DNA of 63,508 bases, counting the filler, from Reticulomyxa filosa (Eukaryota > Protista > Foraminifera), in NCBI GenBank assembly GCA_000512085.1. It is 20 parts of 20 records of this genome, joined end to end, with 100 filler letters (N's around TTAATTAATTAA, not from the genome) between each part and the next. Parts side by side here need not be neighbours in the genome. Positions count along the whole stretch, not along the records: positions 44,414 to 55,455 come from ASPP01005122.1; 19 more parts are not named here. One strand, 5' to 3'. The first letter of the stretch is position 1. Each line of letters starts with the position of its first letter. Position numbers and translations under genes: made by a program. This document shows positions 46,216 through 55,455 of the stretch, in pieces. Below the pieces are notes generated by a model, which was not told the DNA's origin, did no database searches, and saw only the letters and a list, made by a program, of their open reading frames with translations.

Positions 46216-48776
46216 TCATTCACAAACACGAATGTGGCCTTTGTATGAGCCATAATATAGACTAGCACTGTAATTATCGTTTGATTTTTGTTCAATATTC
46301 TTTATTTTCTTTTTCAATGGCACAAATTTAAGACAACATATTCCGCCATCTTCATTTTCATTTCCTTTAATCACATGCAATTGATTTTTATTTGACCGAA
46401 TATCCCAAAAACGAATTGTATTATCTCTTGATGCAGAACATATCACATTTGAACTATCATTATTCTTTATTACAAATGGTGAATATTCAACAGCATATAC
46501 ATAGCTTGTATGTTCATTGAATACTTGAATTTGTTGGCAAGATCGAATATCCCACAAACGAACGCTTGCATCTTCTGATCCAGATAATATTGTATTTCCT
46601 AATTCATTTGATCTATATTTTACACTCCATATACAATCTTTGTGTCCTTTGAATACAATCAATGATTTGGCTGTTTCGACATCCCATATACGAATAGTAT
46701 TATCATTTGATCCAGAACAAATTGTATATCCATTACCACCAATCACGCCAATACTATTACTTTTATTATTATTGCTTTGTAGTGGTGAAAAATCAACACA
46801 CCGGACCCAATTTTCATGTGCATTGAAAATATTTACTGATTTGGATGTTTCAACATCCCATAGACGAACAGTCCAATCTCCAGATCCAGAACACAAATAT
46901 CGACCATTATTAAATGGCGAAAATTCAATGCCACAAACAGCACCAGTATGTCCATTAAATAAATTTAATTGTTGATTATGTTTAATATCCCAAAAGCGAA
47001 TTGTTTTGTCCGATGATGAAGAACAGATAATATTACAACAATGATTATAGTAATGATACGATGAAAATTTCACACAGTATACATAATCGGAATGTCCATT
47101 AAATGATCGAATTTGTTTGTTAGTGTTAATATCCCATACACGAACTGTATTATCATTTGACCCAGAGCAAATAAATTGTCTATCATTGAATGTTGAATAA
47201 TCAATACTCCAAATAATATTGGTATGTCCAGTGAGTGTATTGACTAATTTGGATGATGAACGAAACAAGTCAAAATTTGATAAAGATGACTGATTGGATT
47301 TGACTTGTAATAATGGATTATTGTATTCACTTGTTTTATCTTCATTATGATTAACATTTATTTGATTAATTTGATCTTTGCTTGATTTAGTTTCATTTTT
47401 CAATTGTTCAATTTCAGTTAGTAGGTTGTCCTAATCGATGTTATTTTATTTGTTTGTGTTGTAAACTGAAATACAAAAACAAAACCTACCAACTGTTGTT
47501 TTAAGATTATGTTGTCGTTATTTATTTTTGAAACCACTTCATTTTGTTTTTTTTCATTTAGTTGCCTTTCTGACTTTAAATGTTTGATATCATCCTATAT
47601 TTATTATTTTATTCTTATTACTATCATTGATTACATGATTTGGATTACTGGCTCAAGTGATAGTACACATATATTATACTGACAAATTTTTTAAAAAATG
47701 GCAAGTGTTTACATTTAGTTCCTCAATTTGTTTGTGTTGCGCATCGCTGTTTCTTTTCACAGGTCCTTCCAATTTGTTCGTGCAAATGTTACATTCACCT
47801 TGGCATTGTTCAAATTGCTTCTTGAATTGAATAATATTTTGGTCAATTTCTAATTTCAATTGTTGGATATTTTTTGTCAATTCGGCTATTTGTGCATCTT
47901 TTTTCACAGATTCACATTGTAAATCATCAATTTGTTTCTATTGCATTTTAACAATTCAAGGAGTAAGTAATCAATAAAAAAATCACAAAAAATATTCTAA
48001 AAATAGAAATGTGTACATTAAGTTGTTGAATTTGTTTGCTTTTTTTATTGTCACTTTCTTTCAGATTTTCAATTTCCTTTTTATTTTTTAAATGAGCTTC
48101 TTTTAATTCTTCCTTTTTTTTTTTTATGTTTGTGTATTTTTCCTTTGTTTTTATGATTTTATAATGATTACAATTCATAAATAAACGATGACGAAACCGT
48201 TTGTAATTTTTCCGTTTGCAATTGCGATTGCAATTCTTTGACCAATGAAATAATTTGCTCAATTGAAATTAATTGGCATGACTTGTCCAAATGATCTTTC
48301 ATTTCCTTTATTTTTCCTTTGTGATTGCATTTGCTTTTTGAAGTCCAATTGGTTTCGTCTTCGTATCCTTCTTTTTCTCCTGGTCTTATCCCTTCTTTCG
48401 ATTTTCTCTGTTCCAAATCATATTGTCGAGGACAGACTACTAATAAATCTGAAACTTGCTGTCTCGCTATTCTATTTTTTGAAAATTCGCAATTATCATG
48501 CTGTTGAATTGGGCATTTGCCATTGTTTTGCTTTAAATACGTTTGTAGACATTCTTCTCCGATCAAATATACTTGGTCTGCATTTTCGTGCTCATTGCAT
48601 TGTAATTCTACTGCGTTATTTGCAACTTGATTGCAAAGACAACATATTAATGGGTTTAAATTCTGTAGTCTGTTGGTCAAAAAAATCCAGTCTTTGTCAT
48701 AACAACCAGAACTGGAAAATATTTCTTTTTCATGTTTCAATTTTTTCCCATCCCTTTCCAAATTCAAGGCTAACAT
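46216..48776 (-). CDS. RING - TRAF-type Zn finger - coiled coil - WD40 protein (TRAF7-like architecture, putative E3 ligase)
   Basis: CCLCNQVANNAVELQCNEH...GEECL...CP (variant RING) is followed by CP...CNHKGKIKEMKDHLDKSC (TRAF finger). Several short coiled-coil exons lead to ~7 divergent WD40 repeats in 47403-46216. Confidence 0.85.
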
Positions 48777-49210
48777 TAGCGTTTCTTTATCTTGATGAAG
48801 AGTTTTTTCCAAATAGTTTTTGTTTAGAAAGGGACCCACTTTTTAGCGTGGTTTTTTTTTAGAGCATTCAATATCTTGCATAACGTGTTCTTAATTTAAA
48901 AAGATAAACTGTACATTCAGTTGATGAAAGCAACAAGGACAAAGTATTGTTCTTTGAAGATAATTTCAAAAGAAGATTAATACCGCTCTTGGATTATTGC
49001 TATAATTTTTTTTCACTTCGCAACGAGAATATACAAAAGATGAAAGATAGTATAGAGTTGGAATGTCATTGTGTAATCCCTTAAACGTTTATTGATATCA
49101 TTAATTTTTATGAAGGAGAAGTTGGCATATTTCTAGAGAATTTGAGCAGAAAAACTTTTACAAAAAAAAAGACTTTGAAATTGGTTTTTGAACTCCTTAA
49201 AGAGTTTGAA

Positions 49211-49998
49211 ATGCGCACACTTCAAGTTGCGACCAATCATGTTGTTGGTGCAAATAAAGATGCTGAATCTTTGGCTACTGTTACAAATGAGAGAAGATCT
49301 CTAACTCAGTACTCGGTAACCTACTCTCTTTTTCTCTTTTTGTGTATTATTTATGATTAAAAATGAAAAAATTTGTTTTATTATTAGTTAAAAGAAGCAA
49401 TAAAGATTGTTATTAAAAATTGGTTAACAATTGTAGAAATAAAATTGGATGAATTGATGAATTTGATATATTGGTTACTAAATATGTTAAGTATAATTTA
49501 TAATTAATTATTTTAAATTATTAAATATTTTACAAGAACATACTGATAAAATAAATAGTGTAAGATTGTTTCAGCATCAGATGATATGACAATTTGAATA
49601 TGGAATTCTTCATCAGGAGAAGAAATTACATTCTCATTGGGTAAAAGTTACAGAATTTTCTCCTAATAAAAATATGATTATATATTACAAATCAAGAATT
49701 TATTGTTTCATGCTCACGTGATAATACAATTCAAATATGGAATGTATAATCTGGAGAATTACTTAAAATATTAAAAGGACATTTATCTGTTATTTATGAA
49801 GTACAATCTTTTTCAAATAATCAAATTATTATATCTTGTTCAACTGATAAAACAATTCGTTTATAGAATGTTAAAACGGGATATGAAATACAAAGATTAA
49901 ATTAACATTCTAGTACAGTAAGATGTGAGGATATTTCATTCAATGAAAGTACAATTGTATCAGGATCTGGAGATTGTGCAATTAGAATTTGGAGATAA
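49211..49998 (+). pseudogene. WD40-family pseudogene
   Basis: KIVSASDDMTI*IW, SCSRDNTIQIW, GHLSVIYEVQ, SCSTDKTIRL* and SGSGDCAIRIW occur with multiple stops and frameshifts. Confidence 0.85.
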
Positions 49999-50227
49999 AA
50001 TAATAATAATTCGAGTTTTACATTGACCGTTTTTCTTTGTTGGTGGGAGTATTCATTTTCAATTTTTTTAAACTCTTTTTATGTTTTTAGTGAAAACTTG
50101 TCACTCATGAATTGGAAGTTGAAAACAACCTTAAAAAGTTTATTTTTGAATTTTGAAGAAAATCATTATGCAAAAACAAGAAAATATGTTTTATTTTATT
50201 TGTTTATTTTAATTTTTTAAAAGATAT

Positions 50228-52064
50228 TTACACAGATATCCTTTGTTGGAAGAGGATGTCATAATCAGTTGTGTCCTGACTTTCTACACAATACCATTCA
50301 CCACTTTTATTGCTGCGAATATCCGTTCTGATATCTTGCAACATTTGCTTAAATGGATAACCAATCTTATATTGTGATGTGATAACTTTTTTAATGCTTT
50401 TGCTCAGCAATGACAAATCAGCTACTTGATGCCCCTTTGTGGTTGACCAAATACTCAGAAATCCATCGTCGTTATGTCCATATAATGTTTCATTTCCTCG
50501 TGTTGTAATTTCATGAGCTTTTGGAATACTTTCACCACGACAAGCATCAACTATAAAAATTTTTGGGAAATCTTTGAATGATTCCATTTCGTGACAATTA
50601 AATGATGAACGTATTCTATCAATGGATACATATTTTCCATCGCTTGTCACTAACATATTTCCATTATCTCCGTGTCCACAAATGATCACAATTAATCCAT
50701 CATATTTGTGAGGATTTTTATGAAGTTGATAATTTGTAACTAGTTCAAATAGAAATGATTGAACATCTTGTTTTGTCATATTCGAAGATAAATTACATAC
50801 AATTTCATAATTCAATTCTTGTTCAAATAATTGCTTAAAATTCGTAATGTCCTTTTCTTTTACATTCGGGAGATTACGCCACATTGTATTGTCCATATAT
50901 TCACTAATAGCAATCATTATTACCAATGCATTCTTAATTGTTTTTGTTTTTCCAATTATCGCTGGCCGTTGATACGGAGTCCAAAGAATTTTAAATGTAG
51001 GCTCATTACTTTCAAATTCTTTCTTCACTTTTTCATCTGATTCAATAATATTATCTTTTACATCACTCAATTCAAGTTTTAAATTTTCATTTCTCATTTT
51101 TTGAAAGTCCTTCCATTCCAAGCAATAATAACTTTGACAAACAAGTTCTTCAAATGTCAATCTTTTTACTTTTATCTCTTTTTTTCTTTCGTCTACGATC
51201 ACATATGCTGTCAACTATTTAATATATTGTAATTGTAACTTGAATCAAAAAAAGTAAAAGAAACATAATTAACTTTCTTTTCTATGCTATCTTGATTGCC
51301 CTATTCGTTCAATTACATAATGCATACATTTGATAAATTGTAATAAAATAATAAATAACGTAACAAAAGCAAGAAAAGCATCAATAGAAAAGCAAATAGA
51401 ATCAATATCATTTTCTGTGATTTCATTTTTCCATTTGCATTTATTCAATAACCATATCACAAACTGTTCATTTGACAATGCTTTAAACTTTTCAATTATA
51501 GTTGTTTTGTCTTCTTCGTTTTTTTGACTCCACCATTTTATCCATTCTTTATCTTTCTCCTGTTTTATTTATTTTTGCAATATTTGTTCAGTGCAAAAAA
51601 AAAGATAGAATATAGTCCTAACATTAATCTTTTTAGGTTTTGTCAATTCTTTATCTTTGCTTTGTTGATCTTTTTCTTGCGCTTGTTCTTCTGTTGTCCT
51701 AGTGTAGTAATCATCTTTTAAAAAAATATCGTAAATCAATGAAAAAAATAACATACACAATTTCTTCTTTATATTCATCAAATTTTACCGGTCGTCCGCA
51801 TACTTTGTGTTCTTTGTTTTTTCTATTTTATGTTTTTATATTAGTTGTTTGTCTTTGCTGACATTTTGAAGATCCAAAAATATAATCAAACCTTGCTGGC
51901 CACCATTTGTTGACTTCAGCAAATTTATATGGATAATTTCTTTGTTTGCAAAACGCAAGCATTTGCTTTGTGTCATAGGGATAGTGTCCAACATGTACTT
52001 TAAATTCTTGGCTGATGTCATCCAACGATTTTACATCGCTTTCCTCGCCGGATATGTCAGACAT
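50228..52064 (-). CDS. Caspase-like protease (peptidase C14) with helical N-terminal segments and a PB1-like domain
   Basis: Multi-exon gene starting at ATG 52064. The last exon has NALVIMI, the catalytic ICGHG (His codon ~50673), PKIFIVDACRG (~50540) and the p10-like DGFLSIWSTTKG. The preceding ~80 aa carry a beta-grasp/OPCA-like pattern (LTFEEL...LSDVKDNIIESDE.V). Confidence 0.88.
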
Positions 52065-53018
52065 AATTTTAAATATATCAAATGAAAAAAAAATACTTTT
52101 TTTCTACTCAAAAAAAAGGCTAAGAGGTACAAAACAAGCAACGTATTTAGTAATCTCAAAACGTTTATTTATACTAATATTTTTTAAATAAATATGTAAA
52201 TAAAGGTTGAGTATTAAGTAATTTAAAAGCTTCTACTAATTCCGTTTATTCAATTTTAGAAGTTGTGATGGTCCATGCTGATAACACTCGTTTTCGACTT
52301 TGTATCTCCTTTTCGAACTTTTTTTGAGTGGCTGTCCCATTTTTGTCCTGATCTTACTACGCACGAACAAAAATACGAGATTTTTTGCATTTATAATCAA
52401 TTTTTGAACTGCAAAAAGAAAAAACCACATAGAGAAGTATGACATTTGCGTCCAGACCAAGTAGTAAAAAAAGTTACGTAAATATTGACGGTTCATAGTA
52501 CAAAAAAAGTCTATGCATATATGTACATCTTGTGTGGGTGTACAAAAAGAAATCGATTTTTGATTTGTACATGTTCACAACAGGTATCCAAAGAATTCAA
52601 GGTATGTTAAAAATTTCCACCAGAGATTAACAAATAGAAACTTCTTTTTTTGTCGACATCTCTCGAAAGTGAAAAAAAAACAAATCCACATGATCATTTT
52701 TTGTAGGAAAGATATGCAATTACAACAAAGGAAACAAGATGAAATGGTTTGAGGTCGGTTTTATTTTTCATTTTTTTTTAATGAAAGATTTCATCTTTTT
52801 TTTTTGGGCATAACAAAAGATAATAATCAGTGATCATCCTTTGGAATTGATAAACGCAATGTGGTACCATGGAGGTGTTGTCGACAACGAAGATGTGAGA
52901 GTTTTTTCTCAAAATAAGAGTTATGAAGACAAAACAGTAAATATGCATATTATATATATGTATATATATGTATATATTTGTATGAACAAAGATTGCACAA
53001 CTATATTTAATAGATGAT

Positions 53019-55455
53019 GTGAAATGTAATGGAGGTATGCAAGACAAGAGCAATAGTAATTATACTGATACAAGTGGAAAAGATCGAAAATACGTAAAAG
53101 AAATAAGAGTATTAGTTAGTCTATTCGGAAATTCAATCAATGAAGAAGGATTACAACAGAAAATAGAATATCACAATGGAAATCTTGAATTGGTGATTAA
53201 AGATCTTGTTCAACAATCGATTGAAAATGAGGTATTAAAATAATATGAATAGCAGTGTCTTTCTATTTATCAATATTGATGTTTTATTCCTTTGTTACAA
53301 AAAAAAAAAAAAAAAGATAAATTAGAAGCAGAAAGCAAAATCAATGAATTGAAAGAAACAGAGCAGGTAATAACAAATTTACTTCCTTTATTTGTTTAAA
53401 TATTTCTTTTGTTTTTTGGGGAAATTGATAGAAACAAGTACAAGAAAACGCAGGAAATGAGGACAGTAGTAAGAGTATTCAAAAGGAAATGGAAAAAACA
53501 GAAATAGGAGAAACAAAGCCAGGAATTAATCTGCAAGGATATTGTAGCAATGGAACTTGTTTGGCATCAAAAGCCAAATTACCAGTATGGATAAATATTG
53601 GATTTGATAATATTACATTTATTTCGGACAAGGCATCATTTAGCTGTCCTGATTGTAAAAAATCAACTGCTAATGTAATTATTAAAGCCATGTTTTATAA
53701 CTCTGAACATTCCATTTGTGCAAGTGGTGATTTAATACCTGTAAAAGATAATAATTATCAATGTTCATATACAATCAAACCTGGGTTGTCTTATGAATTA
53801 AAAGCAAACAAAATAAGACAACATGCAAAGAGTATTGAAGATTTAAGAGAAAGGAGTGAATATGCAATGAATAGTATTGAAATAAACAATTTAGTAACAG
53901 AATTGCAAAAATACGAAATCACAGTTGTGAAACCACCTAGTTTAAAAGGAAATGAAAGATTATTGGAAAAGATTCAAGCAGATTATGGTGGTGATTTTAA
54001 TGAAGCATTTGATATTGGAAGATTCACCATTTTATGTGATAATCCAACTAAATTACAAACTGCAGTTGCAGTCATGAAGAAGGCTAGACAATTCAATTTG
54101 GTTGTGTCCGAAGATAAAGACTTCTTTGATAAACAATCAAAGACACATTATCGATTCCATAATATTAAATTGTATGTTTCAAAACATGATGTATATATTG
54201 AAATGCAAGCAACATTGAAAAATTTTACAACATTGGAAGGATACACTGTGATCGAAAATCCAAAATTTAGTCATTTATTTTATGAACATATTCGAGCATG
54301 GAAACCTAATAATCAAATTGAAGAAGAATTAAAACAAGCGAGTGATAAAACATTGACTAAAATCAATGATATAATTTGTGAATGGATTAATACAAAAGAA
54401 ATCCAAAAAATTGCAAATCGTTACAAGCCACATTCAGAAATTCGAATATTGAAACCTCCACAACTGAAAGGAATAAATGAAGAAGAAATTAATTCCAAAA
54501 ATGATATTTCATTAAAATTGATCAAATTTGTTTATGATCAACTTTGCAAATTCAATCCAAAGGAAATGAAAGGAAAAGCTATTTATGTTATTTTATTTGA
54601 ATATTTCAAAGGATACATTATTGGTGAAATGAATCCAGCGAGTTGTGCTGATGTTATATCACTATTAAAAGAATCAAGGAAACAAGAATTAGAAGAAGAT
54701 ACAACAATTTCACAAGCACTTGAAACATATATTCCATTACAGGCAAACAATTATCCATATACTGACGATGATAATAATAAAAAAAGTGATTCATATGATT
54801 GTCATCAATATATTATTGATTCATTAAGAGAAGAAAAAGAAGAAACAAAAAATGAACAACAACAAGTGATAATACTACAAGGAAAATCAGGAGCAGGTAA
54901 GAGTCTATTTTGTCGTCATTTAGAAGAGGCATTGTGGGAATTATATGCAAGTGGTTCTATAACATCCATTCCTGTTTATATTTCATTACCAAAATGTTAT
55001 AATGAAGTAAACGAAAAACAAATAATCTCTCAAGCACTACAAATGAAACAAATCAATAAAGAGATAATTGACGTTATTCGCGAGAATATTTCATTTGTGT
55101 TTATTTTAGATGGATTTGATGAAACATTTGACAAATATGATAAAAATAATAATAATGAAAGATATTTTTATGATCGGTTCAATTTAAATGAATGGAATGC
55201 AAAGATAATAGTAACCTGCCGAAGCCATGTGTTAAATGATGAAGATATTAAAAGCGTTTTAATTGGTTCAAAGAACATTACAACAACATCAATTATATAT
55301 TTGTGGCCTTTTTCAAAAGAACAAATGAATGGATATATTGATAAATTTGTAAAAATGAATAAAAAAAATAAAATGAATGATTATTTGAATTGGACAATAC
55401 AACAATATGAAACAACATTGAAAAATTATCCAAATTTAAATAAAATGATGGAAGA
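53019..55455 (+). CDS. NLR-like STAND protein paralogue 2: CUE/UBA-like - C4 Zn domain - RelA/SpoT-like NTase - NACHT (3' truncated)
   Basis: An exon EIRVLVSLFGNSINEEGLQQKIEYHNGNLELVIKDL and two short introns come first. Then GINLQGYC...CPDC, LKGNERLLEKIQADYGGDFNEAFDIGRFTI, HYRFHN, IEMQAT, SHLFYE, GKSGAGKS (~54881) and FVFILDGFDE (~55094). Collinear with the 20.3-24.2 kb gene. Confidence 0.9.

Follow-up and report, generated by a model that had tools for sequence, protein, structure and literature searches.

Does the head-to-head arrangement of a caspase-like gene and a NACHT gene in the foraminifer Reticulomyxa filosa reflect a conserved cell-death module, or the intermixing of large gene families? 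The question is raised by one contig of this species (ASPP01005122.1, 11,042 bp, three annotated genes), which is part of the 63,508-nucleotide stretch of joined genomic pieces analyzed here (the window). An original prediction had placed on this contig a RING-like/WD40 gene (-), a broken WD40 gene (+), a caspase gene (-) and a NOD-like receptor (NLR) gene with a NACHT domain (+), and proposed that they include a co-regulated module of recognition and regulated death. The present analysis, in which each exon of the spliced gene models was checked and searched separately, found all four genes on the single contig and on the strands proposed. The caspase and NACHT exons correspond to RFI_06001 (100% identity) and RFI_06002 of R. 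filosa, respectively. Word searches retrieved at least 55 caspases, at least 56 NACHT proteins and at least 40 RING-zinc-finger proteins as relatives, every one of them from R. filosa (these counts are lower bounds, each search being limited to a length range). These families are expanded, as the prediction had itself cautioned. Patterns specific to these families gave no match in metagenome and viral scans. Overall, the contig is best read as a patch of four separately expanded, intermixed and fast-turnover defence-like families of R. filosa, and the caspase-NLR linkage as real but loose, without any fixed unit.

Adjacency of caspase-like and NACHT genes

Recurrence of the association among paralogues, the test that had been proposed with the prediction, was examined in two ways. 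The first compared the locus tags of 45 caspases and 53 NACHT genes after removal of the index pair. Two pairs of neighbours were found (RFI_01852/RFI_01853 and RFI_03874/RFI_03875) compared to 0.12 expected (p = 0.006-0.009); since several distances were tried, the corrected p is nearer 0.04. Both pairs sit on consecutive contigs (1843/1844 and 3566/3568), so that their physical link and orientation are only compatible with a head-to-head arrangement. Furthermore, the contig of RFI_03875 carries the 3′ half of a NACHT-WD40 gene located 1.2 kb from the caspase, in tail-to-tail orientation. The RING list did not give any tag-adjacent pair with the caspase or NACHT family, these lists being small.

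In the second test, four NACHT paralogues were fetched for their long upstream flanks, together with three caspases. One of the four, RFI_31743, has on its contig, in head-to-head orientation, a broken caspase gene along with a fragment of another; the broken partner is a pseudogene and the NACHT gene is at least largely intact. Finding one paired contig out of four by chance has a probability of 0.6-6% if a genome that we take to be about 100 Mb contains 60-600 caspase loci. No caspase was found within 4-6 kb upstream of the three other NACHT paralogues, and none of the three sampled caspases has a divergent NACHT gene (the flank being just 1.4 kb for one of them). RFI_05515 and RFI_10549, the closest relatives of RFI_06001, show no divergent NACHT gene in the flank present.

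Taken as a whole, caspase-NACHT adjacency is above chance yet a minority state, based on small numbers. The proposed recurrence is thus found, in a modest form, for caspase and NACHT genes (two tag pairs, one head-to-head and one tail-to-tail contig); the three-gene module is not supported, the RING gene showing no specific link to either of them. As to a conserved head-to-head pair, recurrence exceeds chance but pairing is not the usual state and the partners do not co-diverge. A cell-death module shared by caspase and NACHT genes is possible rather than shown because in both families the copies sampled are mostly unpaired.

Other neighbourhoods were observed in the retrieved loci: (i) a further expanded family, which by eye combines PUB and ADP-ribosyltransferase-like domains, adjoins a caspase in L005 (387-3918) and a NACHT gene in L011 (681-3322), (ii) in L012 (3600-9359), a Kelch-caspase gene is followed by a RING-zinc-finger-WD40 gene on the same strand and in the same order as in the window, and (iii) a stand-alone WD40 gene lies upstream of the NACHT gene of L009. 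Some caspases lie on contigs consecutive to those of other caspases (ETO07240/ETO07241 and ETO04845/ETO04846), suggesting that this family also forms local clusters of its own.

Genes of the contig and their predicted products

The NACHT protein probably carries its own enzymatic effector, an alarmone synthetase, since the fold and the active-site residues of small alarmone synthetases (SASs) are kept in its N-terminal part (coordinates of all features are given in Table 1). The predicted model of this part is confident (predicted local distance difference test of 86) and its top Foldseek match is the toxin Tas1 (E = 3.7e-7). With VIA, Tas1 (Z = 11.4) is tied with SASs of Bacillus subtilis (Z = 11.9 and 11.1), and the top matches of both searches are all RelA/SpoT homologue synthetases; the Pfam RelA_SpoT profile remains under its cut-off (E = 3e-4). 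The conserved residues of the SYNTH domain are K153/R157/K161, D175-x-G-R178, K210, H224-N225 and E238-x-Q240, among which D175, R178, K210, N225, E238 and Q240 are retained by 22-23 of the 24 aligned copies (23 of 24 for the catalytic Asp, Arg, Glu and Gln). The R, K, N, E and Q residues follow the order of the ATP-binding residues of Apk1 (PMC12691689), a match by order and spacing and not by residue-level superposition. With this N-terminal effector domain of SAS fold and a NACHT domain that has Walker A and B motifs, RFI_06002 has the characters of NLR-like STAND (signal transduction ATPases with numerous domains) proteins of the NWD type. The gene is truncated by the contig end, and its WD40 tail is deduced from paralogues (P0076, P0104 and L011).

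The Cys-domain + synthetase unit is duplicated in tandem in P0056 (RFI_08856); P0103, for which no NACHT domain is recorded, has this unit fused downstream of beta repeats labelled VCBS. In the Atlas, clusters from diatoms and from Nucleocytoviricota resemble the synthetase region in structure, as does a TPR-fused cluster; this type of synthetase may therefore be more widespread in eukaryotes and giant viruses.

The prediction had described a CUE-Zn-RelA/SpoT-NACHT gene starting at ~53020. Its synthetase fold, its four invariant cysteines and its Walker motifs were retrieved, unlike the CUE domain, and the start is further upstream. The four cysteines of the beta-rich domain are a probable zinc site; this domain, although confidently modelled, gave no Pfam or fold match, the fold searches being dominated by the synthetase domain. 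The upstream spliced blocks are conserved in four paralogues; their phases chain in the window copy and the paralogues carry stops, so that they may be 5′ untranslated exons. Since these blocks begin at ~52571, the interval shared with the divergent caspase gene is not ~1 kb as first proposed but half a kilobase; it is a possible bidirectional promoter.

Two other details of this gene were noticed. A di-glycine just ahead of the presumed start Met (53023-53043; CNGG-MQ, LLGG-MQ or LAGG-MQ) is kept in most paralogues with an annotated N-terminus (P0059-P0107). It resembles a ubiquitin-like processing site, and no upstream ubiquitin-like domain was detected. The acceptor of the small exon 53317-53366 (region 53298-53318) is one G short compared to paralogues, beside a long A run, which indicates either a sequencing error or a skipped exon; the frame survives skipping.

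The caspase-like gene agrees with its initial description, i.e. a PB1-like/caspase gene on the minus strand starting at 52064. Its last exon holds both the PB1-like domain, whose VIA matches are middling (Z = 7.9 to the Par6 PB1 domain and 7.4 to CIDE-N), and the protease domain, which is closest to animal caspases (Z = 22.8 compared to 18.4 for MALT1 and 16.6 for a metacaspase). The S1 pocket of Asp-specific caspases is basic and includes two Arg and one Gln that select Asp. In RFI_06001, the first Arg aligns with Leu/Pro, the Gln is the invariant Asp and there is no SWR-type Arg; the protein thus has the fold and the His/Cys dyad of Asp-specific C14A caspases but lacks their basic pocket. 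Because the S1 arginines are missing and the Gln of QACRG is an Asp, specificity for Asp is disfavoured and the protease probably cuts after basic, not acidic, residues.

The caspase paralogues carry N-terminal Kelch repeats that are absent from RFI_06001. Their place is taken by two short predicted exons without any relative among the fetched proteins, suggesting a local rearrangement. The first one (51892-52064, -) encodes a small helical-looking peptide that has weak look-alikes from giant viruses and Mucoromycota in the Atlas and faint matches to integrase zinc-binding domains.

The left-hand gene of the contig had been predicted to encode a RING-TRAF-WD40 E3 ligase. Its strand and its C-terminal WD40 part, the only part detected by Pfam, agree with this proposal. 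However, the MATH and RING Pfam profiles do not match, and the absence of a MATH domain shows that it is not a TRAF proper. The Cys/His pattern of a RING and of a TRAF-type zinc finger is visible without any Pfam match, and UniRef labels paralogues as 'TRAF-type domain'; from this pattern and these labels, the product is a candidate E3 ligase. The start Met (48776) was placed by comparison with paralogues, and since they begin at this Met, the TAA at 48842-48844 was rejected as a break in the gene. The neighbouring WD40 relic has stops in all frames, in agreement with its description as a pseudogene. The possibility that it derives from the tail of a former NACHT gene, implying tandem caspase/NACHT units, was rejected because it carries the N-terminal 'IKLGWI' helix of the R. 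filosa stand-alone WD40 family.

Table 1. Positions, along the window, of the features of contig ASPP01005122.1
Feature	Position	Strand	Remarks
RING-like/TRAF-type zinc finger/coiled coil/WD40 gene	46216-48776	-	Five-exon model, intact, in phase, stop-free; exons 48776-48198, 48112-48017, 47937-47713, 47594-47490, 47430-46216
Broken stand-alone WD40 gene	~49390-49995	+	~3.5 repeats, several stops and frameshifts
Caspase-like (C14) gene RFI_06001	50228-52064	-	In-phase six-exon model, 507 aa, GT-AG introns; exons 52064-51892, 51822-51757, 51698-51623, 51559-51365, 51300-51274, 51214-50228; ATG 52064, stop 50228
Catalytic Cys in DACRG	50540-50542	-	Asp invariant in 26 paralogues; QACRG in animal caspases
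Catalytic His (CGHG)	50672-50674	-	Dyad intact
PB1/ubiquitin-like beta-grasp domain	50978-51214	-	Directly ahead of the protease domain
Interval from the caspase ATG to the first conserved spliced block of the NACHT gene	52065-52570		~0.5 kb
Upstream spliced blocks of NACHT gene RFI_06002	52571-52919	+	Three blocks: 52571-52601, 52707-52753, 52820-52919
Exon with conserved GG-MQ motif and small helical domain	53014-53231	+	No Pfam support for 'CUE'
Beta-rich four-Cys domain	53501-53810	+	Invariant Cys at 53543, 53558, 53645, 53654
Small-alarmone-synthetase (RelA/SpoT SYNTH) domain	53828-54241	+	Fold and active-site residues
NACHT NTPase	54866-55455	+	Walker A 54881, Walker B 55103; PF05729 above cut-off; ends at contig end

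Origin and meaning of the linkage

The reading that we favour, to which we give about an even chance, is that of a self-contained SAS-NACHT-WD40 sensor-effector and of a parallel, loosely linked caspase arm, both belonging to intermixed defence-like families; all activities, the role in defence and the reason for the linkage are presumptive. The NACHT-WD40 protein would be an NLR-like switch whose WD40 repeats (seen in paralogues) would sense a ligand, and whose NACHT domain would oligomerise and turn on its own synthetase domain. The latter would pyrophosphorylate ATP/ADP, GTP/GDP or tRNA ends, and the syncytium would thereby be arrested or killed locally, in its affected part. The caspase-like protease would be a second and mostly independent arm, combining a Kelch sensor (in full-length paralogues), self-association of PB1 type and a His/Cys protease. 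Linkage would result from repeated rearrangement among neighbouring family members, and would perhaps be partly kept since both act in defence.

The history of the two families was compared. In a quick tree, for which alone the pseudogene facing RFI_31743 was read through with an X at each break, the paired caspases are spread over four sub-branches. Four-fold sites are more diverged in the caspases than in the NACHT genes paired with them for four of the six comparisons between pairs (p from 0.02 to 1e-4, the pseudogene being involved in three of these), for example 0.50 versus 0.31 (p = 0.02) or, with the pseudogene, 0.68 versus 0.29 (p = 1e-4). A single recent block duplication of all pairs is therefore rejected. 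A transposon carrying the caspase/NACHT pair was also ruled out since there are no terminal repeats. Either repeated juxtaposition or an old block followed by gene conversion would explain the pairs.

It should be emphasized that several observations weigh against the reading favoured here: (i) the paired NACHT genes all belong to one 21-member subclade, (ii) RFI_06002 is the sister of the paired RFI_01853 (92/80, the bootstrap being not settled), and (iii) the caspase-NACHT excess is confined to immediate neighbours (distance 1), with none at 5-100 tags. As all four adjacent caspase-NACHT cases are, in addition, on opposite strands, the association looks more specific than general mixing.

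This specificity is what would be expected from a true co-regulated receptor-protease pair, in which a bidirectional promoter would drive both genes, the activated NLR would recruit or license the caspase (e.g., via PB1), as for fungal NWD2/HET-S or plant head-to-head NLR pairs, and unpaired copies would be decay products. The excess at distance 1 only (p ~0.007), the head-to-head pairs on one contig in the window and at RFI_31743, the compatible contigs 1843/1844 and 3566/3568, the shortness of the shared interval (just ~0.5 kb) and the catalytic residues kept by both genes of the window agree with such a pair. We nevertheless consider this main rival unlikely: no homotypic domain common to the two proteins was found, the NLR comes with an enzyme of its own, the partners differ in branch and in silent divergence, and the caspase facing RFI_31743 is broken. 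Furthermore, paired copies are in the minority (at least two of the 45 other tagged caspases and one of the four sampled NACHT genes), and orientation across contigs is ambiguous, since 3566 and 3568 may carry the halves of one NACHT gene in tail-to-tail orientation with the caspase. A rhizarian death module devoid of death folds, whose receptor, NLR-like and equipped with an active Tas1-like (p)ppApp synthetase, would be repeatedly head-to-head and co-transcribed with a PB1-bearing, non-Asp caspase-like protease, is likewise unlikely.

We regard as more doubtful still a neutral hitch-hiking, in which an old caspase/NACHT block would have been segmentally duplicated and its NACHT genes later homogenised by gene conversion, without any shared function; the NACHT genes would then look younger than their caspase partners because of this conversion. 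Over the shared region, similarity to the window copies ranks alike in both families (RFI_01853 > RFI_03874 > RFI_31743 for NACHT genes, and RFI_01852 > RFI_03875 > the caspase facing RFI_31743), and four-fold-site divergence between the window pair and RFI_01852/RFI_01853 is no different between the two genes (0.32 versus 0.25, p = 0.43). The grouping of all paired NACHT genes in one subclade would also be expected. However, DNA similarity between pairs was found in the genes and in the upstream blocks of the NACHT genes alone, and the flanks present of RFI_05515 and RFI_10549 show no divergent NACHT gene. Finally, an explanation by chance alone, given very large families and a fragmented (and perhaps mis-joined) assembly, is improbable: the families are large, their lists incomplete and the numbers small (two tag pairs and one sampled contig, with the corrected p given above), but both separate tests exceed it.

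Comparison with known systems

The prediction had seen in the association of a STAND receptor and a caspase the logic of apoptosomes and inflammasomes. This is not upheld by our results: the NLR has its own enzymatic effector, the caspase is devoid of Asp-selecting arginines, most sampled copies are unpaired, and no CARD, DED or PYD death fold was detected by Pfam, whether in the exons of the contig or in 26 paralogues of the caspase (for the two small helical exons, which might hide a divergent one, the search was by profile and not by fold). Reticulomyxa caspases are known to be closely related to those of animals (Klim et al. 2018, PMC5982838), and RFI_06001 has the C14 fold and the His/Cys dyad in common with animal caspases and MALT1. 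It differs from animal caspases by its DACRG motif, its S1 pocket and the presence of a PB1-like domain (Kelch in paralogues) in place of CARD/DED.

Adjacency of a STAND gene and a candidate death effector is likewise found for NWD2/HET-S and for fungal gasdermin-protease clusters (PMC10197012). In these fungal systems, pairing is the rule (~80% of fungal gasdermins) and a shared motif joins NWD2 and HET-S (PMC10197012), whereas in R. filosa a minority of copies are paired and no motif common to the partners was found. A functional caspase link would represent a STAND-caspase pathway that exists outside animals and dispenses with death folds, and would bear on the origin of apoptosome-like signalling and on how infected sectors could be walled off in a giant syncytium; otherwise, the contig simply gives an ordinary example of the expanded families of this genome.

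Bacterial NACHT proteins carry alarmone-synthetase or caspase effectors (Kibby et al., 10.1101/2022.07.19.500537). They similarly associate a STAND NTPase with a nucleotide-signal effector, with a proposed role in defence, but the R. filosa gene is eukaryotic, with introns, and the caspase is a separate gene; PADLOC gave no match of note. The synthetase domain resembles Tas1/Apk1 and other SASs (PDB 6ox6, 6fgk and 7ztb; PMC12691689) by its fold and by residues that follow the order seen in Apk1. However, identity is ~21%, and the R. filosa domain is joined to a STAND switch rather than secreted or kept in check by an antitoxin.

The literature search, which did not cover subscription journals, gave no paper linking Reticulomyxa with NACHT or ppGpp (the single NLR match concerns animal apoptosis) nor any on RelA_SpoT-NACHT receptors in Rhizaria. 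The closest described architecture is the fungal RelA_SpoT-NACHT-WD40 class of NLRs (Dyrka et al. 2014, PMC4986451; review PMC10197012), which shows the same order of alarmone synthetase, NACHT and WD40 (the latter from paralogues here) and belongs to the class of enzymatic N-terminal effectors. The R. filosa proteins, whose likeness to this class is by architecture, differ by their rhizarian host, additional small helical and four-Cys domains, pentapeptide repeats in paralogues and a number of copies of at least 56. The reviews consulted give no tested product for the fungal receptors. With this copy number, a conserved active site and an ATP-depleting toxin as top structural match, R. filosa makes the product of a eukaryotic NLR alarmone synthetase directly testable.

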